The notes under the pieces are model-generated. The model was not told the origin of the DNA. It ran no database searches and was given only the letters and a program-made list of their open reading frames with translations. Shown here piece by piece: positions 1 to 9,337 of a stretch of DNA of 9,337 bases. Position 1 is the first letter of the stretch; each line of letters begins with the position of its first letter. Location: contig MTSL01000209.1 in assembly GCA_002794465.1 (NCBI GenBank), positions 12,019 through 21,355 of the forward strand, in the 5' to 3' direction. Origin of the DNA: Paramicrosporidium saccamoebae KSL3. Lineage: Eukaryota; Fungi; Cryptomycota. A program made the position numbers and the translations under genes.

Positions 1-881
1 TCTGGCTCAATGAAGGCTTCACCATGTACTTGGAGCGAAAGATCTTGGCAAAGACTCATGGCGAAGCAGAGAGACAGCTCAATTCAATCGTCGGATTGTC
101 TGCTTTGAAGGAAGACTTGGAACTCTTGGAAAATGGACCACTGACCAAATTGGTACCCGATCTGAGTACCACAGATCCTGATGACGCTTTTTCCCAGGTC
201 CCATATGAAAAGGGTTACATGTTGCTGTACACACTGGAAAAGCTGGTGGGAGCTGAAAAGTTTGAAGCCTACTTCAAAGCCCACATTGAGAAATTTGCAG
301 GCGAATCCATCGACACCAATCAATTCAAAGCATTCATTATGGAGTATTTCTTGGAAGACCCCATTCATCAGCAACTGATTGAATTCCCATGGGATGAGTG
401 GCTATACGGGACCGGTCTGGGACCATCAACACCGGAATTTAGCGAAGAACTCGCGATACCCTGCAGGCTGTTAGCCATGTCTTGGAAGGAAAATGGTTCA
501 CCCAATGATATCGAATTCAGCAGCTTTAGGGTATGGCAAAAGATCATGTTCCTTGACAATTTGCTCGATGCCAAGCATGTACTTTCTGTGGAGACAGTCG
601 ATAAACTGGCCCATGAATACCAACTACCTAGTTGCACAAATGTGGAAATTTTGTTAAAATGGTACCTTTTATGCATCAAGTCACATGCTGAGCATTTCTA
701 CGAGGCGGCCGCCCAATATGCGGCTACATATGGCAGAATGAAGTACAACCGTCCAATTTATCGCGCCCTCTATCATAGCGGTCCATTTGGAAAAAATCTC
801 GCCTTGGAAACATTCAAAAAACATCGTGCGACGTATCATCCAATTGCTGTCCAGATGATCTCCAAGGATCTCGAGTTATAA
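1..881 (+). CDS. LTA4H: LTA4H/Lap2-like M1 aminopeptidase, copy 1 (5'-truncated by the window)
   Basis: Frame is open from base 3 (WLNEGFTMYLERK, with the third Zn ligand Glu). It contains DPDDAFSQVPYEKG (catalytic Tyr) and the LTA4H C-terminal domain with GRMKYNRPIY (732-743) and YHPIAVQMISKDL. It ends at TAA 879-881 and is collinear with copy 2 at a 2060-bp offset. Confidence 0.95.
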   Translation, partial: WLNEGFTMYLERKILAKTHGEAERQLNSIVGLSALKEDLELLENGPLTKLVPDLSTTDPDDAFSQVPYEKGYMLLYTLEKLVGAEKFEAYFKAHIEKFAGESIDTNQFKAFIMEYFLEDPIHQQLIEFPWDEWLYGTGLGPSTPEFSEELAIPCRLLAMSWKENGSPNDIEFSSFRVWQKIMFLDNLLDAKHVLSVETVDKLAHEYQLPSCTNVEILLKWYLLCIKSHAEHFYEAAAQYAATYGRMKYNRPIYRALYHSGPFGKNLALETFKKHRATYHPIAVQMISKDLEL

Positions 882-1035
882 TTCTACATCTTTCAATTAC
901 TGACCATATCATAATCAAGTTACAATTTCTAAATCTTCCAGTGCATTGTTTCATCTCTCCATTAAGCAATATCTGAAAAGTTTACCGCGGCCATAAAGAT
1001 ATATTAATCTATGATATGATTTTGTTTAATTTGGG

Positions 1036-2941
1036 ATGAGATTATATAATCTTGTCGCCGGCTGGGCGAGCATACTGGTCGCCCATGCAGCCGTATCGGT
1101 ATCAATTGAACAAAGTATTGACCTTTCTACTATAGCGAGACCCCAATTCAGTGGCAAATATTGACGTGTTCCAGACTACACATATTCATTTGGCCTGGGA
1201 CGTGGACTTTAATACCTCAACAATCGAGGGAATCGCAACGCTAACTTTGAAACGTGTGGGCCAGGGCAATAAATTGATCTTGGACTGCTCCCATCTGAGG
1301 ATTCATACTGTTGCAGGGCTCATTAGCTCATATCACGTTGCTCTGGAGTATTCCAAAGATTCTTCAGCAAGTCCATTTGGAGGAGCACTTACCATCACTA
1401 TTCCATATGAGTTTGACAACTATACCATCGACATTAGCTACTCCACCACCAAAAAAAGCACTGCTCTACAATGGCTTACTCCTGAACAGACACTTGGCAA
1501 AACACATCCCTATATGTTCAGCCAGTGTCAAGCCATCCATGCACGTTCCATGCTCCCGTGTCAGGACACGCCTGCCATCAAGGCAACTTACTCAGCACAT
1601 GTTACGGTACCAAAACCATTGAATGTTGTGATGAGTGCCAATCGTCGAGAGGAATTCCAGGTCGCCTATCGCGACGATCGTATCGTTCACTTTGGCCAAA
1701 CCACCCCCATTCCAGCATATTTGATTGCAATTGCAGTAGGAGACATCCACCCAAGAGAGATTGGGCCGCGTTCTGCTGTTTGGTCTGAAGCGGAGAATCT
1801 GGAGGCCGCGGCTGAAGAGTTTTCAGAAACCGAAACGTTTATCAAAACTGCCGAATCGCTTGTTGGGCCGTATGTTTGGGAGCGCTATGACATTCTCGTC
1901 CTCCCACCCTCATTTCCCTATGGCGGTATGGAGAATCCCTGCTTGACATTTGTCACTCCCACCATCATTGCTGGCGATAAATCGCTGGTTGACGTGGTTG
2001 CCCACGAGATTGCGCATAGTTGGACAGGAAATCTTGTCTCTTGTGCGAGTTGGGAACATTCCTGGCTCAATGAAGGCTTCACTATGTATTTGGAGCGAAA
2101 GATCTTGGCAAGGACTCATGGCGAGGAAGAGAGACAGCTTAGTTCAATTGTCGGATTGTCTGCTTTGAAGGAAGATTTGGAATTCTTGAGAAATGGACCA
2201 TTGACCAAATTGGTACCCGACTTGAGTGCCACAGATCCTGATGACGCCTTTTCTGAGGTTCCATATGAGAAGGGCTACTTGTTGCTGTACACGTTGGAAG
2301 AGCTGGTAGGGGCGGCAAAGTTTGAAGTCTACTTCAAAGCCCACATTGAGAAATTTGCAGGCGAATCCATCGACACCCATCAATTCAAAGCATTCATTAT
2401 GGAGTATTTCTTGGACGACTCTATTCATCAGCAACTGATTGAATTCCCATGGGATGAGTGGTTACACGGAACCGGTCTTGGACCATCGACCCCGACATTT
2501 AATGACGAACTAGCGATACCCTGCAGACTGCTAGCCGAGGCTTGGATAGAGAACGATGCTGCCAATGAGATTGACTTCAGCAGCTTTAGGGTATGGCAAA
2601 AGATCATGTTCCTTGACAATTTGCTCGATGCCAAATATGTACTTTCTGCGGAGACAATCGATAAACTGGCCCATGAATACCAACTACCCAATTGCACAAA
2701 CATGGAAATTTTGGTAAAATGGTACATTTTATGCATCAAATCGCGTGCTGAGCACTACTATGAGGTGGCCGCTCAACATGCAGCGACACATGGCGTAATG
2801 GGGCATAGTCGTTCAATTTACAATGCCCTCTATCAGAGTGGTCCGGTTGGGAAATATCTCGCATTAGAAACATTCTACACTCACCGTGCAGTCTATCATC
2901 CAATCGCCGCGAATATGATCTCCAAGGATCTTGGGTTATAA
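1036..2941 (+). CDS. LTA4H: LTA4H/Lap2-like M1 aminopeptidase, copy 2; probable join(1036..1092 or 1098, 1136..2941), about 620 aa with a predicted signal peptide
   Basis: Contains SQCQAIHARSMLPCQDTP, GGMEN (1922-1936), HEIAH (2003-2017)-X18-E (2072-2074) and VPYEKG (Tyr 2264-2266). The frame extends upstream of GTG 1151 as RDPNS (1136-1150) to an in-frame TAG that doubles as a splice acceptor. ATG 1036 encodes MRLYNLVAGWASILVAHAA(VS). Family call is firm; the 5' exon structure is inferred. Confidence 0.9.
1093..1135 (+). other. Short spliceosomal intron of copy 2 (acceptor 1135; donor GT at 1093 or 1099, alternatively 1115)
   Basis: Has GTATCG/GTATCA/GTATTG donor candidates, a branch-like TTGAC (1118-1122) and a pyrimidine-rich CTTTCTACTATAG acceptor. 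Removing 1093-1135 (43 nt) or 1099-1135 (37 nt) puts ATG 1036 in frame with the peptidase. Confidence 0.7.
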
Positions 2942-3131
2942 TTTTACATTTTTTAATCACTGATCATGGCCTTAAATTGCAATTTCCGCATACATTCAAT
3001 AGGGCTTTGTATAAGCCTAAAACAGCATTCAATAATCTCAACATGAGTATGCCAATCTGATGAGCCATGACCATAGGAAGTAGATTAGATATTTAGGGGA
3101 TAAATCGAACCCCACCGCACTTCAATTTAGG

Positions 3132-5175
3132 ATGAGATTGCATAGTCTTGTCACCGGTTCGGCGAGCCTACTGGTCGCCCATGCAGCCGTATCGGTATCA
3201 ATTGAACCAAGTAATAATCACGCTGTAGAGGGATCCCAATTCAGTGGCAAATATTGACGTGTTCCAGACTACACATATTCATTTAGCCTGGGACGTGGAC
3301 TTTGATACCTCAACAATTGACGGTACTGCAACGCTAACGTTGAAGCGTGTTGGTGATGGCAACCAACTAGTCTTGGACTGCTCTCATCTGGTAATTCATA
3401 ACATTATCGAGACCAATGACCTATCCTCTGCTCCTCTGAACCATGATTTCAAGCCTTCTGCAAGTCTCTTTGGAGGATCGCTTACCATTACTCTCCCAGA
3501 AGGGCGTGATACTTACACCATTTCTATTAATTATGCCACCACCGACAAGAGTTCTGCTCTACAGTGGCTCACTCCCGAACAGACACTTGGCAAAGTATAT
3601 CCGTATTTGTTCAGTCAATGTCAAGCCATCCACGCGCGCACTATGCTTCCATGCCAAGACACGCCCGCCATCAAGGCCACATACTCGGCGTCCGTCAGGG
3701 TACCAAGCCCATTGAATGCTGTGATGAGCGCTAACCGTCGAAAGGAAAGCGAGGCCTCTTCTTCCGAGGGGCGCTACTTTGAATTCAAACAAACCACCCC
3801 CATTCCAGCGTATCTGATCGCCATCGCAGTAGGAGACATTCACTCGAAAGAAATTGGTCCACGTTCTGTTGTGTGGTCCGAAACAAAGAATCTGGAGGCC
3901 GCGGCCGAAGAGTTTTCAGAAACTGAAGCGTTTATCGAGACTGCCGAATCGCTTGTTGGGCCGTATGTTTGGGAGCGCTATGACATTCTAGTTCTCCCGC
4001 CCTCATTTCCCTATGGCGGCATGGAAAATCCCTGTCTGACCTTTATTACTCCTTCCCTCATTGCCGGCGACAAGTCACTTGTCAACGTGCTTGCCCACGA
4101 GATTTCACATAGCTGGACAGGCAATCTAGTCTCATGTGCGAGTTGGGAACATTTCTGGCTCAATGAAGGCTTTACTAGGTTCCTGGAACGAAAAATCTTG
4201 GCAAAGGCTCGTAGTGAGGCAGAGAGACAACTTCGATCAACTACAGGACTGTCTGCTCTGAAGGAAGATTTGGAATTCCTGAAAAATGGACCATTGACGC
4301 AATTGGTACCCGATCTAAGTGCTGACAGTCCCGATGATGCCTTTTCTCAGGTCCCATACGAAAAGGGCTACATGTTGCTCTATACGCTGGAGCAACTGGT
4401 GGGAGCTAAAAAGTTTGAAACCTGCTTCAGGGCGCACATTGAGAAGTTTGCAGGCAGATCTATTGACACGGATCAATTCAAAACATTTATTATGTATCAT
4501 TTCGTAGACGATCATCCCGTCCACCAGCAGCTCGTCAAATTCCCCTGGGACGAGTGGTTTTATGGGACCGGCTTGGGGCCGTCGACGCCAACATTTAGCG
4601 AAGAGCTCGTAACGCCCTGCAAACAGTTGGCCGAGTCGTGGATAGAGACTGATATTACCAATGAGATGGAATTCGGCGACATTGGGGCCATGCACAATAA
4701 TCCAAGCTCCATGAATGGTGCTGCCAGTGAAAATGCACCAAACGACTATGGAAAGTGGCACAGCAGGCTGTGGAAGGAGACTGGTGTTATCAATGAAATT
4801 GAATTTAGTAGCCTTGGAGCCTGGCAAAAAGTCCTGTTCTTTGGCAATTTGCTCGAGTCTGAGCACGTGCTTTCTGTAAAGATGATCAACAAAATTGCCG
4901 ATGACTACAGTTTACACACCTGCACCAATGTGGAGGTTCTACTAAAATGGTACCAGTTATGCATCAAGTCACGTGCTATACGCTTCTACGAAATGGCTGC
5001 CCATTATGCAGTGGCACATGGTAGAATGAGGTACAACCGTCCAATTTATCGCGCTCTTTATAATTCTGGTCCCATTGGGCAAGACCTCGCGTTAGAGACG
5101 TTCAAACTTCATCGTGCCGTATACCACCCAATTGCCGTGCAAATGATCTCCAAGGATCTCAATCTCGAATTGTAA
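3132..5175 (+). CDS. LTA4H: LTA4H/Lap2-like M1 aminopeptidase, copy 3; probable join(3132..3188 or 3194, 3229..5175), about 667 aa with a predicted signal peptide and a 44-aa insertion
   Basis: Contains GGMEN (4015-4029), HEISH (4096-4110)-X18-E in HFWLNEG, VPYEKG and GRMR (5020-5031). RDPNS at 3229-3243 follows a TAG acceptor. ATG 3132 encodes MRLHSLVTGSASLLVAHAA(VS). Confidence 0.9.
3189..3228 (+). other. Short spliceosomal intron of copy 3 (acceptor 3228; donor GT at 3189 or 3195, alternatively 3211)
   Basis: Same position as the copy 2 intron, with ends GTATCG...CTGTAG. Removing 40 or 34 nt restores frame. The 3' part is unalignable with copy 2, while the flanking codons differ only synonymously (CGA GAC versus AGG GAT). 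Confidence 0.7.
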
Positions 5176-5231
5176 TTTCGCAACTTTCAATTAGTAATCA
5201 TGATCTCTAATTGCAATAGCAGCATCTGTCC

Positions 5232-5237
5232 AATAAA
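5232..5237 (+). terminator. Candidate polyadenylation signal (AATAAA) for copy 3
   Basis: AATAAA lies 57 nt after the copy 3 stop in a 139-bp intergenic gap. Motif match only. Confidence 0.3.
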
Positions 5238-5314
5238 ATCACAGCATCTCCCAATCAATATTGAACAATCTCAGCATCTTTAATAAAGTAGCGCCACTTG
5301 TCGCACCAGGGACT

Positions 5315-7012
5315 ATGTGGCTTCCAGTGCTCGGACTGCTGGGTGCAGTGGCATGCAGTGTCGCAAATTACAGCCACTCCCTCACGAATGTCTCTCTCGA
5401 TATGGATATCGCACCATCGATGCAATGGTTTAAAGGAGCTGCCACTCTGACAATGAAACGCATAAGGAACGAAAGAGTCATGGTCCTTGATTGTGGAAAA
5501 TTTCATGTGACAAAGATAACGTGTCTCGAGCAGGACGTACAATTTCGCCAGTTTCCTGGCAGAGTGGAAGTTCTTGTTGAAAAAGCCGATCCTGTGATAG
5601 TCATCCAGGTTGCATACAAGGGATCCTTTGACAGCAACTCATCCATAAGAATGGTACCAGATCACAACGGGCTGCCTTCGTTTCATTTTATCCAAGACGG
5701 AAGAAATCTTTTTCCATGCCCAGATGTAAATACCTCTCAATTCACTTTTGCAGCCTCAATCAGGGTCCCGGGTTCCCTTTCGGTAATCTTTTCCGCTAGT
5801 CTAGATTCCTACGAGAACCATACATTCCACTATAAGCAAGACAATCCCGTGACCACCAGTCAGTTGGCCATGGCGGTTGGCAGAATTTCCCACCACAACA
5901 TTGCATACGGCACCCTTTATGTGGAAACTGTATCCCAAACTGCTGCGCTTGCCTATTTGTCGCGATGGAAGGAGCTGATGGATACCAAGGAGGCAACGTT
6001 CCGTCGCGAACGTGGTCTCAGTGTTCTGGTAATGCCATCTAGCTATCCTCAGCCCTACGCTGCTTACGAAAATTTGATCCTGGTGAATTCCGAGTTGGTT
6101 ACAGAGGACCAATCCCACCTGCCCGTTTTGATCCGCGCCATTGCAACCAGCATTACTATCGGACTGCGTGCCTCGGTGGAGGATAGATGGCTTAAGGAAG
6201 GTCTGATTAACTGGATTGAACGCAAGATGCTGCATCATGTTGTTGACCCGTCTCTAGCTCAACACGTGGCATTGAGGGCATGGGAGAAGGAATTTTCAAC
6301 CAATTCTATTTACAGCACGACTGCTGAACGTGCATTCGCCATGTTCATCAGGCTGGAAAGTCTAATCGGCCTTGAAATGTTTACAAATTTCATGACGACC
6401 TTTATATCACGCAACATGTTCATTACTCCTGGCAATCTTCGCTCCGAAATGCTCAAAGTCTTTCATAATCTGCCATGCATAGACAAATTACGGCGGTTTC
6501 CATGGGATGAGTGGTGCTCTCCTGGTCAGATGCCCGATATCCCGCATTACCGGGACACTCTGTCAGCTGCACCCTTAAAACTGGCGATATCTTGGCTAAA
6601 TAACAAAGTGCCCATCGACAGCCAATTCGCAAACCTCAACTCGGTGCAGAGATCACTCTTGTTTGATCTTCTTCTCTCGGACCATTCGAGACTCACTCCC
6701 GCTACTATCTACCAGATGGATTCTATTTATAGCCCTTCCTTTTCGCCTGATCCTGTCATCCGCTCAAAATGGTTTGTGTTGCTGGCACGCACCCGCAGCT
6801 ATAAGTGTTATGAACAACTGCATTCCGGGCTGCTGACTCTAAATATGGCGGAGCATTGCATACCCGTATATGTGGAGCTGCGTGCTGACACGCAGTATGA
6901 GTGGAGTGCGTCGGCATTGGAAAAGTTTCATGAACACCGAAAGTTGCTTCATGTGAGTGTCTCCAAAGTGCTTAAAAGGCTCAATCCATCTCCCAAGAGA
7001 GCCTGCCTCTAG
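5315..7012 (+). CDS. Divergent LTA4H-like M1 peptidase homolog, predicted catalytically inactive (pseudoenzyme), 565 aa with a predicted signal peptide
   Basis: Alignable by eye to copies 2 and 3 along its length: SVANY/SVANI, GAATLTMKR, VLDC, LFPCPD/MLPCQD, SVRVPGSL, QLAMAVG, WLKEG, FPWDEW, KWFVL. GGMEN becomes AAYEN (6059-6073), HEIAH becomes RAIAT (6134-6148) and PYEKG becomes TAERA. The first ATG is 5315 (MWLPVLGLLGAVAC). Confidence 0.85.
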   Translation: MWLPVLGLLGAVACSVANYSHSLTNVSLDMDIAPSMQWFKGAATLTMKRIRNERVMVLDCGKFHVTKITCLEQDVQFRQFPGRVEVLVEKADPVIVIQVAYKGSFDSNSSIRMVPDHNGLPSFHFIQDGRNLFPCPDVNTSQFTFAASIRVPGSLSVIFSASLDSYENHTFHYKQDNPVTTSQLAMAVGRISHHNIAYGTLYVETVSQTAALAYLSRWKELMDTKEATFRRERGLSVLVMPSSYPQPYAAYENLILVNSELVTEDQSHLPVLIRAIATSITIGLRASVEDRWLKEGLINWIERKMLHHVVDPSLAQHVALRAWEKEFSTNSIYSTTAERAFAMFIRLESLIGLEMFTNFMTTFISRNMFITPGNLRSEMLKVFHNLPCIDKLRRFPWDEWCSPGQMPDIPHYRDTLSAAPLKLAISWLNNKVPIDSQFANLNSVQRSLLFDLLLSDHSRLTPATIYQMDSIYSPSFSPDPVIRSKWFVLLARTRSYKCYEQLHSGLLTLNMAEHCIPVYVELRADTQYEWSASALEKFHEHRKLLHVSVSKVLKRLNPSPKRACL

Positions 7013-7515
7013 TCATAATAATCTATCCATTAATATCAGTCTCACTGGATCGGATCCTTCGGCCATGCTATTGTAATGTAGAGACTTGGTTGATGAGCGA
7101 ATTAGCTTTATTAAAGTGTGTGGCTCATTTATAGGCAGCTGCCCTTACTATGACGGGAGTGGCTTGTGGGATCGCTACCTGAGTCGGACTCACCAATGAT
7201 AAGCGGATACTGTTTAAGAGACTCTTTTGCCGTAGGAGCTACTTTCGCACACACTTGACGAGAGAGTTGATTTTGCGAGGTATAATATACCTTTTATAAA
7301 GCGAAATCTTTCACCTGAACATGCTCTAAATAGATGTTATCATCCCTTGAACGCAAACTGGTTCACCACGTATCACTATGATCCCAACCAATTTTGCTAG
7401 TGGCACACATACTGATTACTGGCGAATAAGGGGGTTTATTGAGTGCGACCGCGTTTCGATCGTTTTGGTTGTACTCCTTGGTTTGCGGTCCACGTCACCA
7501 GTGGTATTCTTGGCA

Positions 7516-7599
7516 CAATTCCATTGGAACGACTGTCTCCTTGCGGTACCATCCCCAAACCAGTTCCATTGGAAAGAGTTCCTCCCAGTGATCCCCTCA
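7516..7599. repeat. Diverged direct repeat with a 45-nt period (7516-7554 and 7561-7599)
   Basis: caattccattggaacgactgtctccttgcggtaccatcc versus cagttccattggaaagagttcctcccagtgatcccctca, 27 of 39 bases identical. Confidence 0.75.
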
Positions 7600-7749
7600 C
7601 AGCAGCAATCCAGAGTAGTAGTCCGAGCAGCAACATCAATGCGGTTTGTTTGCATGACGGGTGCAAATTTGTATTAATGCGGAAACTATGCTATACCGAT
7701 GCGGAAAAGCGTACTTTAAGCCAATATAAAAGTCTGCACTTGTATTAAA

Positions 7750-7975
7750 ACTCTTGTGATGTAGAAGATTGATTAGTTGGGTACTTGAGGACAATGTCCT
7801 AGTTTAGAGCAAGCCATAAAAGACCGCGGGATCAGCGTCTCTACCATTTTAAGATTATTACTAACGCTACTTGCGGGGCCATAAAAGGGTTTACAAATTG
7901 ATAATAAGAGTTCCCTTGCCTCCCGAACAACCATTGTGTCAAAGTTTGTGGTAACTTCCGCGCTACGCGACACTT
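7750..7975. repeat. Dispersed or segmental repeat, copy A
   Basis: 7761-7800 matches 9041-9080 at 33/40. ATAAAAGGGT is at both 7881 and 9161 (same 1280-bp offset). A third block, tgtggt...ctacgcg, is near 7947-7969. Confidence 0.8.
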
Positions 7976-8118
7976 TAATTTGTATGTATACTCTTTCACA
8001 CGGTAATTAGATGGCGTTAGTGAGACATTTGTACCCATTTACGACACAATCTCATATTAATGCAGTGAATTGTATAATTTGTGACTACGAAAACAGTATA
8101 TAGTATACCGCGCTAATT

Positions 8119-8937
8119 ATGTTTCCCCTTCTTTTGCTCTTGCGCATCTGTCATCTCTGTATCGCTAGTACCGATGCCTCCCTACGTAGAAACTCGTTCA
8201 CTCTCTCACCACATAATACTCAAAGAGCCCAGAGCAATTCTCCGCATTCCCCGCATTCCCCGCATTCGCTACATTTCACACATTCTTCGCATTCCATATA
8301 TTCTCCACACCCCGTGCAAAATCCATCCCATTCCATTTCTCACTCCACCTCTCAATCACGCTCCCGTTCTCGCTCGCCTCGCGTTGGAGTAAAACATTCC
8401 ACTGTCATTAAATCCGTGAGTCGGTTCATAACGCGTCTCAAGAGCCATCATTTTGAGTGGACGGAACATCGAAGACTGCGGGCTCTCACCTGGCGGGGAT
8501 ATATTTGTCGCGAGGAAAGCAGTGAAATGCTTAAAGTCTTTGCCGAAGAATATTTCAAGATCCTGGCGGACCACCTCGCTGTGGCTATTGAGGAAAATTT
8601 GCTGTCACACGAGGATTTCAAATTTCTGATTAGAGAAGGCTTTAGTGACATTTTGTTAAAATCGACATATTGTGGACGGCGGGACACTTTGGATGAGTGG
8701 CCACCACTACTTGATCTCGTGGATCATGCGGCAATGTGGTCGGAAGAGTCATTTCTTCATATCATTTTCCACAAAAAGCAGTGCTTGAACAACAGCAAAG
8801 TGCGTGCATTGCTAGAGAATCCCAAATTCTGGAATGCAGCATTCAAGATAAATGCGAATACAGTGACCAGTTACGCGGGCGAATATTTAGGCGCACAGGC
8901 CATAAAAGATCTCAAAGCCAGATATCTATACGAATGA
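8119..8937 (+). CDS. Hypothetical protein, 272 aa, with a predicted signal peptide, a low-complexity His/Ser and RS region and a probably helical C-terminal domain
   Basis: ATG-to-TGA ORF with a hydrophobic N-terminus (MFPLLLLLRICHLCIA) and codon-phased 9-nt repeats. AATAAA lies at 8964-8969 after the stop. I do not recognise a family. Confidence 0.75.
   Translation: MFPLLLLLRICHLCIASTDASLRRNSFTLSPHNTQRAQSNSPHSPHSPHSLHFTHSSHSIYSPHPVQNPSHSISHSTSQSRSRSRSPRVGVKHSTVIKSVSRFITRLKSHHFEWTEHRRLRALTWRGYICREESSEMLKVFAEEYFKILADHLAVAIEENLLSHEDFKFLIREGFSDILLKSTYCGRRDTLDEWPPLLDLVDHAAMWSEESFLHIIFHKKQCLNNSKVRALLENPKFWNAAFKINANTVTSYAGEYLGAQAIKDLKARYLYE
8242..8313 (+). repeat. In-frame 9-nt tandem repeat (CCGCATTCC and variants) encoding X-His-Ser tripeptides
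   Basis: ccgcattcc ccgcattcc ccgcattcg ctacatttc acacattct tcgcattcc atatattct ccacacccc translates to PHS PHS PHS LHF THS SHS IYS PHP. Confidence 0.9.
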
Positions 8938-9029
8938 AGAATGTGAGCGGGGATTGTGTCTATAATAAACAGTCTTTACTCCTGGTCTGTAAGTTTGAAA
9001 TGTCCTCTCTCGCTCCTCATATTTTTAAT

Positions 9030-9240
9030 AATCCTGTGACGTAGAGGATTGATTAGCTGGGTATTTGAAGATAGTTTCCTAATGTGGAGAAAAGCTAGTT
9101 GTGTGCTAAAGTGGATCGCTTTGCTGAGTATTTTATAATTACTACGTTGTTTGTGAGACAATAAAAGGGTCGTTGGATTGACTGAATAAATTCTCTTCTC
9201 ACCTGGTAAATTCTGTGGTTTTATTCCCACTACGCGGCAA
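9030..9240. repeat. Dispersed or segmental repeat, copy B
   Basis: Homologous blocks to 7750-7975: gtagaggattgattagctgggtatttgaag, ataaaagggt and tgtggtt...ctacgcgg. Confidence 0.8.
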
Positions 9241-9280
9241 TCCTACTCCTTGTACTCTTACTCACCTTTTCATATTCTTA

Positions 9281-9337
9281 CTCACACTCTCATACTCTCA
9301 TACTCTCATACTCTCATACTCTCATACTCTCATACTC
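9281..9337. repeat. 8-bp tandem repeat (CTCATACT)n, truncated by the window end
   Basis: One variant unit (ctcacact) followed by six perfect CTCATACT units (9289-9336). Confidence 0.97.

Follow-up and report, generated by a model that had tools for sequence, protein, structure and literature searches.

Why a genome should carry, side by side, four leader-bearing genes for a peptidase that is normally cytosolic and encoded by one copy is the question raised by one contig end of Paramicrosporidium saccamoebae, a Rozellomycota parasite growing inside the nucleus of Saccamoeba (PMC5701793). The window, meaning the whole stretch of DNA that was analysed, takes up the final 9,337 bases of contig MTSL01000209.1 (21 kb; GCA_002794465.1), and its proteins are 100% identical to P. 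saccamoebae proteins on that contig. Positions upstream of the window are given on the contig record (L001), where the window position equals the L001 position minus 8965. A six-frame listing of open reading frames (ORFs), Pfam and a PDB sequence search identified four + strand genes of the LTA4H/Lap2-type M1 aminopeptidases, arranged head-to-tail and named here A, B, C and D. Their sequences point, with fair though limited confidence, to a four-gene tandem expansion in which each product would carry a Sec-type signal peptide and work outside the parasite cytosol, probably in the harvesting of peptides. The preliminary description of this DNA had left its source between a parasite and a saprotroph; it is the former.

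Array layout and leader exons

The features of the array, all in window coordinates, are the following:

1..881, + strand: copy A, C-terminal half, read in frame from base 3 (WLNEG.., 3-881), stop TAA at 879-881 (Pfam, ORF)
1036..1098, + strand: copy B leader exon, 21 codons, MRLYNLVAGWASILVAHAAVS (direct reading; the NCBI model P0001 also includes the leader)
1099..1135, + strand: copy B predicted intron, 37 nucleotides (nt), phase 0, GTATCA...CTATAG (direct reading)
1136..2941, + strand: copy B main exon, from RDPNSVAN.. to TAA (whole gene 1036-2941)
3132..3194, + strand: copy C leader exon, 21 codons, MRLHSLVTGSASLLVAHAAVS (direct reading)
3195..3228, + strand: copy C predicted intron, 34 nt, phase 0, of the same sequence as the copy A intron
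3229..5175, + strand: copy C main exon, beginning RDPNSVAN (whole gene 3132-5175)
4660..4791, + strand: in-frame insertion of 132 nt (44 codons) in copy C
5315..7012, + strand: copy D, 565 amino acids (aa), intronless, with a 14-residue leader, MWLPVLGLLGAVAC, followed by SVAN

The spacers between the four paralogs, counted from each stop to the next ATG with the leader ATGs included, measure 154 (A-B), 190 (B-C) and 139 nt (C-D), in agreement with the distances of about 140-190 bp first reported. The array has exactly four members. Upstream of it comes an acetyl-CoA synthetase gene, and on the downstream side (window positions 7013-9337) neither tblastn nor blastn found a fifth M1 copy or remnant. 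The 5' half of copy A (leader exon, intron, N-terminal domain and GGMEN) is located upstream of the window, and a 212-N scaffold gap (L001 8754-8965), which ends directly before window position 1, sits within this gene and masks its HEXXH. The NCBI model of copy A (P0003) splices round this gap, and its 548 aa product wrongly seems to be without an active site. In GenBank, the array genes are labelled 'leukotriene A-4 hydrolase' or 'peptidase M1', and their 5' models are inconsistent.

A hydrophobic leader stands directly before the (RDPN)SVAN start in every visible 5' end, as had been proposed; it was read in B, C and D, and also in copy A upstream of the window (MILHRLVAGLASILAVNAAVS), where it is followed by an intron identical to that of copy C and then by RDPNSAAN. 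In the leader of copy B, residue 2 is basic, the hydrophobic core is free of charges and residues 16-18 read A-H-A; exon 2 of this gene begins CGA GAC CCC.. (RDPNSVAN). In copy D the leader is fused straight to SVAN with no intron, whereas A, B and C have it on a separate exon of 21 codons, with a phase-0 intron of 34-37 nt after it. Introns of this length are normal for the P. saccamoebae genome, given that a Rab/Sec4-like GTPase gene on the same contig (L001 4215-5020) has introns of 28 and 31 nt, both GTAG...TGTAG.

The leaders were judged as signal peptides heuristically, on Kyte-Doolittle hydrophobicity, n-, h- and c-region anatomy, ortholog controls and conservation. The maximum 10-residue Kyte-Doolittle hydrophobicity within the first 35 residues (KD10) was 2.47 in A, 2.20 in B, 1.92 in C and 2.51 in D, against 0.87 +/- 0.55 in 115 orthologs from fungi, animals and metagenomes, only two of which (P0013 and P0076) possess a true N-terminal hydrophobic segment. 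N-termini of this kind are therefore rare among the orthologs. Each of the four leaders shows none or one basic residue near its start, 12-16 uncharged hydrophobic residues, and small residues at -3/-1 before the mature start (VNA in A, AHA in B and in C, VAC in D; VDA is also among the leader motifs). This anatomy fits the n-region, the h-region (about 7-15 residues expected) and the c-region of a Sec-type signal peptide. AlphaFold (AF2) leaves residues 1-13 of D unstructured (pLDDT <50), apart from the folded body of the model. Entry of A-D into the endoplasmic reticulum (ER) and the secretory pathway is a prediction well supported by these sequence features, and the leader is probably cleaved after residue 18 in A, B and C (Ala18) and after residue 14 in D.

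Hydrophobic leaders of this kind could also act as mitochondrial presequences, or as uncleaved type II signal anchors such as that of the classical membrane-bound aminopeptidase N. Type II membrane proteins are common among the M1 enzymes that do not belong to the LTA4H subfamily, a point in favour of an anchor. P. saccamoebae also retains a functional mitochondrion (PMC5701793), to which a presequence might lead. However, the uncharged cores of about 12-16 residues are short for a membrane span and lead into A-X-A-type motifs of small residues, and a contiguous hydrophobic run with at most one basic residue (none in D) is not an amphipathic Arg/Ser-rich helix. Either of these two functions for the leader seems highly improbable.

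The closest full-length relatives of the array genes, with 54-61% identity, belong to uncultured Paramicrosporidium-like organisms (P0004, P0005, P0006 and P0008; loci L002-L006). These leaderless genes are single-copy and are flanked by a protein kinase gene on one side and a JAB/USP8-dimer gene on the other, a conserved neighbourhood that differs from that of the array. In L003 and L005, the loci with readable 5' ends, an ATG stands immediately 5' of RDPNSVAN with no hydrophobic leader, and the intron acceptor TAG of A, B and C occupies the exact position of this ATG. This correspondence points to the recruitment of a leader exon upstream, with the old start codon turned into a 3' splice site; a leader exon added where the leaderless relatives start would redirect a cytosolic enzyme to the ER and the secretory pathway. 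As a separate observation on these relatives, the ORF extends upstream, at 1378-1410 in L003 and 262-294 in L005, to a conserved M-[S/T]-C-C start (MTCCAAAARQM.. and MSCCTKKMGSM.., respectively), which could represent an alternative start with a Cys-Cys acylation-like motif before the Met preceding RDPNSVAN.

Leader-bearing relatives occur on two environmental contigs (L088 and L089; JGI 3300063079), each of which also carries a dead paralog resembling copy D. Some 400-500 nt downstream of the D-like gene, on the same strand, a leader exon (MKLRSIIAAAVAVLSVDAGVS or MKLCGGIAVAAALSVGVTVS) is followed by a 31 nt intron and by LDP[NH]SVAN. In a DNA alignment of five genes (A, B, C and those of L088 and L089), the ATG, the TCG|GTAT donor, a TAAC/GAAC element in the intron and the TAG acceptor are invariant, and the leader codons have diverged with their hydrophobic character kept. 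The leader-bearing fragment of L089 shows 41-49% identity to both A/B/C and the leaderless group, which assigns it to neither. The layout shared with these contigs indicates that the leader-plus-array architecture is older than P. saccamoebae, and these few are its only examples in the public sequence collections searched. The array had been described as a lineage-specific family; this stands with respect to the closest leaderless relatives, which are single-copy and in another neighbourhood, but the family is not specific to the species, as uncultured relatives share both the leader architecture and the dead paralog. A metagenome scan with an alignment of D and P0122, its closest relative, gave 111 pattern matches and no relatives. 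A second scan, with copy B, returned 80 loci, all with at most 45% identity and representing generic, largely bacterial-type LTA4H homologs; these loci add nothing on leaders or arrays and were set aside.

Active sites, selection and the dead paralog

The Pfam domains Peptidase_M1_N, Peptidase_M1 and Leuk-A4-hydro_C were all matched above their curated cut-offs in B and C; the partial copy A matched the catalytic domain and Leuk-A4-hydro_C. Copy B aligned to human LTA4H with E = 8e-153. The survey of residue states covered the 117 columns of the alignment whose conservation among 111 orthologs reaches 97% or more. Copy A has changed at two of its 101 visible columns, with no catalytic residue among them, copy B at five of 117, including R563V and K565G (human numbering), and copy C at three of 117, including K565R. 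The motifs visible in copy A are Glu318 in WLNEG (3-17), Tyr383 in PYEKG (201-215) and the carboxylate clamp GRMKY (732-746), and only the distal Glu of its zinc site can be read. Copy B presents GGMEN (1922-1936), HEIAH (2003-2017), WLNEG (2063-2077) and PYEKG (2261-2275), and copy C presents GGMEN (4015-4029), HEISH (4096-4110), WLNEG (4156-4170), PYEKG (4354-4368) and GRMRY (5020-5034). The zinc site HEXXH-X18-E, with the catalytic Glu296, is kept in both B and C. The exopeptidase motif GXMEN (Glu271) and the proton donor Tyr383 are present in all three of A, B and C.

The main difference among these three copies lies in the clamp. Arg563 and Lys565, whose columns both belong to the near-invariant set, are key tripeptidase residues that position the C-terminal carboxylate of tripeptide substrates (PMC9177663). 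The pair is kept in A (GRMK), conservatively changed in C (GRMR), and lost in both B (GVMG, in GVMGH at 2792-2806) and D (LNMAEH, 6839-6856). Since copy B keeps GGMEN, HEIAH, Glu318 and Tyr383 but not the clamp, its catalytic machinery is read as intact and its substrate anchoring as altered. A and C look like canonical LTA4H-type enzymes and are predicted to be active. The 44-residue insertion of copy C, which stands where the catalytic domain gives way to the C-terminal one, represents an internal tandem duplication that has diverged; direct repeats occur at 4638-4667 and 4770-4799. Members of the LTA4H subfamily are B, C and probably A, and D is a pseudoenzyme derived from it.

Copy D has changed at 73 of the 117 near-invariant columns. 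PYAAYEN (6053-6073) is found in place of GGMEN and RAIATS (6134-6151) in place of HEXXH, with the loss of His295, Glu296 and His299; Tyr383 is replaced by Ala (TAERA, 6320-6334), the segment around Asp375 is deleted, and Glu318 is retained (WLKEG, 6188-6202). In Pfam only Leuk-A4-hydro_C passes, although an alignment of the protein with LTA4H covers residues 38-549 (E = 3e-16). The AlphaFold model of D has a pLDDT of 84.8 and a pTM of 0.85, and its best structural matches are to human LTA4H (TM 0.80), the alignment given to the predictor having included canonical LTA4H sequences. Only three relatives of the D type were found among 1.84 billion representative proteins: P0122, which is 60% identical, and the more distant P0123 and P0128. 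HEXXH is absent from P0122 and P0123, and P0128 is without the whole catalytic domain. The conservation of D at 60% identity in P0122, together with dead relatives elsewhere, argues for a maintained pseudoenzyme and not a decaying gene; judged from its sequence and its model, D is a folded, conserved dead enzyme. Canonical (A and C, with the HEXXH of A masked), altered (B) and dead (D) members therefore do stand together in the array, as was first supposed.

Two further observations concern the D-type proteins. In P0128 (L089 1-1085), the N-terminal domain is joined almost directly to the C-terminal domain, and an in-frame stop or an unrecognised intron is present at 250-254. D (window ~6998-7009), P0122, P0123 and P0128 end in A-[C/T/A]-L (RACL, NATL, LAAL and PAAL, respectively), an extension that canonical LTA4H does not have. 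A reading of these A-x-L ends as PTS1 was rejected, as the basic residue needed for PTS1 is missing.

Among A, B and C, dN/dS is 0.18-0.22 and dS 0.5-0.9 (Nei-Gojobori), indicating that these copies have been held by purifying selection since duplication. In a neighbour-joining (NJ) tree, bootstrap values are 100% for A+B+C, 87% for A+B and 100% for D+P0122, and the array genes cluster with Rozellomycota-like sequences. D and P0122 form a long-branched clade inside the Paramicrosporidium-like group, and because of this long branch the tree places D only to the Paramicrosporidium-like clade. The sequences suggest that D split long before A, B and C separated and that it bears an independent leader with a different gene structure.

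The 5' ends of the genes have a history of their own. The regions of about 80-95 nt upstream of A and C (L001 7765-7839; window 3050-3131) are nearly identical, and that of B is unrelated; the 34 nt intron is likewise identical in A (L001 7903-7936) and C (window 3195-3228), yet A pairs with B in the protein tree. In the leader region dS is 0.13-0.21, far under the gene-wide range, and this low value and the 5' region shared by A and C suggest gene conversion or a mosaic 5' end. The sequence (C)CACTT(T/C)AATTT lies ~5-20 nt 5' of the leader ATGs in A (L001 ~7820-7839), C (window ~3112-3131) and both environmental leader-bearing genes (L088 ~1370-1386; L089 ~1432-1448), with only TTAATTT in B, and could be a core promoter or 5'-UTR (untranslated region) element. 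At the other end of the genes, ~50 nt are conserved 3' of the A, B and C stops (882-935, 2942-2995 and 5176-5225), with the pattern TAATT.TACA..TTTCAATTACTGA.CAT...AATTGCAAT, which may be a common 3'-end or termination signal carried by duplication.

Several points weigh against A-D being exported proteins. The NCBI 5' models conflict, with a donor 6 nt upstream in B and another donor in C (both keep the leader), and the model of A starts at another ATG and omits the conserved DPNSAAN. The h-region of C is only moderately hydrophobic (1.92), the leader of D has no basic residue, and leader dN/dS is ~0.9, a value that is uninformative as it comes from only 21 codons. In addition, the annotated P. 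saccamoebae proteins showed no LTA4H without a leader, and both the destination of A-D and their substrates are wholly inferred. Were every copy to be exported, the role in the cytosol would have been lost, unless it is filled by a gene that escaped annotation or by protein that is not translocated.

The conflicting gene models, and the lack of another annotated LTA4H gene to supply the cytosolic function, would also be compatible with leader exons that are unused or non-functional. The array would then consist of ordinary cytosolic LTA4H/Lap2 enzymes duplicated in tandem, one of them decaying, the 5' ORFs would be by-products of annotation or duplication, and the low leader dS could reflect gene conversion and not protein constraint. 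However, the first Met in exon 2 of A, B and C lies >120 residues in, so that a start codon is required upstream. The leader ORF, intron position, donor and acceptor are kept in L088 and L089, where the residues have diverged yet remain hydrophobic, and the early-diverging D possesses a hydrophobic leader of its own in a different gene structure. A comparable N-terminus is found in only ~2 of the 115 orthologs, and the identity between D and P0122 does not fit a decaying gene. A cytosolic array with idle leader exons is consequently quite doubtful.

Destination, proposed role and neighbouring sequence

If A-D are an exported peptidase set, as we favour, the four proteins would be imported co-translationally into the ER, where removal of the leader, probably after Ala18, would leave a protein that starts almost exactly as the cytosolic orthologs do. 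The enzymes might then act on the host side, in the nucleoplasm that surrounds the naked parasite, or within a digestive vacuole. A and C would trim N-terminal residues off short peptides with the tripeptide preference of the LTA4H type, B would probably take substrates needing no free carboxylate at clamp distance, such as longer or blocked peptides, and D may have a non-catalytic role, for example in binding or as a partner. The likely pay-off would be a supply of free amino acids to a parasite whose amino-acid biosynthesis is reduced and whose amino-acid permeases are duplicated. P. saccamoebae is probably unable to make histidine and tryptophan, may need host intermediates for eight other amino acids, and has two expressed, duplicated amino-acid permeases (PMC5701793). 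An exported and diversified aminopeptidase set fits the amino-acid need that this reduced biosynthesis and these permeases indicate. P. saccamoebae branches beside Microsporidia and lives naked inside the amoeba nucleus, and the array gives concrete gene products to the question of its amino-acid source.

A signal peptide specifies ER entry alone, and the proteins may instead remain in endomembrane or extracellular structures of the parasite, and not be host-directed effectors. The sites would be the digestive or phagocytic vacuole, the polaroplast and polar-filament apparatus, or the spore wall, where the peptidases would digest internalised host material or mature secretory proteins of the parasite. 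The genome paper proposed host-protein proteolysis after phagocytosis or translocation of host material as the amino-acid source (PMC5701793). The RNA used for annotation came from spores (PMC5701793), and if the gene models are supported by it, the genes are expressed at the spore stage. Moreover, no host-targeting motif or nuclear-localisation feature was seen in the array proteins. On the other hand, no ER-retention (KDEL/HDEL), transmembrane or glycosylphosphatidylinositol (GPI) signal was seen in them either, and their C-termini are ordinary for the family; the ends KDLEL, KDLGL and KDLNLEL, tried as ER-retention signals, were rejected since they are also present in cytosolic orthologs. 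Sequence does not separate a vacuolar route from secretion, and retention within the parasite is a possibility to which we give some weight, if clearly a minor one.

A more specific scenario, which we regard as unlikely, concerns the fate of D within such an exported family. The family would have arisen from a cytosolic peptidase through a leader exon whose acceptor overwrote the start codon, and would then have split into active, clamp-less and dead members. D would be a secreted peptide-binding factor in the host nucleus, which sequesters or presents host peptides or serves as a partner subunit of A, B or C. If true, D would represent a new effector class for Rozellomycota and microsporidia-like parasites.

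Downstream of the array, an unusually long stretch of ~1.1 kb (window 7013-8118) contains no annotated gene, no ORF longer than ~100 aa and no tRNA or Rfam match, in a locus where the spacers elsewhere are of 139-190 nt; no tRNA genes or Rfam families were found anywhere in the window. The next annotated ORF (window 8119-8937, + strand) encodes 272 aa, with an N-terminus resembling a signal peptide (MFPLLLLLRICHLCIAS), and a Ser/Pro/His-rich repeat (SPHSPHSPHS; tandem repeats at 8237-8309), and has no Pfam match. It may encode another secretory-pathway protein adjoining the array. The contig ends with seven copies of an 8-nt tandem repeat (CTCATACT; window 9281-9337), and before them a 20-nt repeat is located at 9253-9322; these repeats are probably the reason why the assembly stops here.

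Comparison with known systems

The genome paper contains no occurrence of secreted, peptidase, leukotriene or signal peptide (PMC5701793), and no paper in the searchable literature brings together microsporidia, M1 aminopeptidase and signal peptide. That literature also seems to contain no description of the leader, the array or the pseudoenzyme clade, nor of the combination of a leader exon at the old start codon with tandemly arrayed genes, one clamp-less and one a conserved dead paralog, in the sister lineage of Microsporidia.

The array shares the three-domain architecture of human LTA4H and Saccharomyces cerevisiae Lap2 (PDB 1HS6 and 2XPY), and fungal and animal LTA4H orthologs show 45-48% identity to its genes. 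The LTA4H/Lap2 motifs GXMEN, HEXXH-X18-E, Tyr383 and Asp375 are present in B, in C, and in A where visible. However, human LTA4H and Lap2 are leaderless and usually single-copy, whereas the array has four tandem copies with hydrophobic leaders, one of them clamp-less, one with a 44-residue internal duplication and one catalytically dead. The leaderless genes of the uncultured Paramicrosporidium-like organisms have the (R)DPNSVAN start in common with the array but are single-copy and ATG-started.

Bacterial exported LTA4H-like enzymes, such as the cold-active aminopeptidase of Colwellia (PDB 3CIA) or the lipoprotein-type P0125, which starts MKCKWLLIVTSIVVTGFGLVGC, belong to the same subfamily and carry N-terminal export signals. 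These enzymes differ in their identity of only ~38-40%, and in having no intron-separated leader exon and no arrays with pseudoenzymes; they were rejected as the source of the array genes, which cluster with Rozellomycota-like sequences. Among eukaryotes, the obligate intracellular parasite Plasmodiophora brassicae has an LTA4H-domain protein with a predicted signal peptide (SPQ94386.1), as in the array (PMC8595600). It comes from an unrelated lineage and is an entry in a candidate-effector table only, with no array, altered clamp or dead paralog reported (PMC8595600).

Set beside these systems, the array illustrates clearly how an enzyme may be retargeted when a leader exon is added at its old start codon. 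It also offers a natural series for enzyme evolution within 9 kb, with canonical, clamp-less, insertion-bearing and conserved dead copies. The last of these has a general counterpart in TAF2, an M1-fold pseudoenzyme. Like TAF2-type proteins, D keeps the fold without the zinc ligands and catalytic residues; unlike TAF2, it is a recent offshoot of the LTA4H subfamily, with a leader, in tandem with active paralogs.

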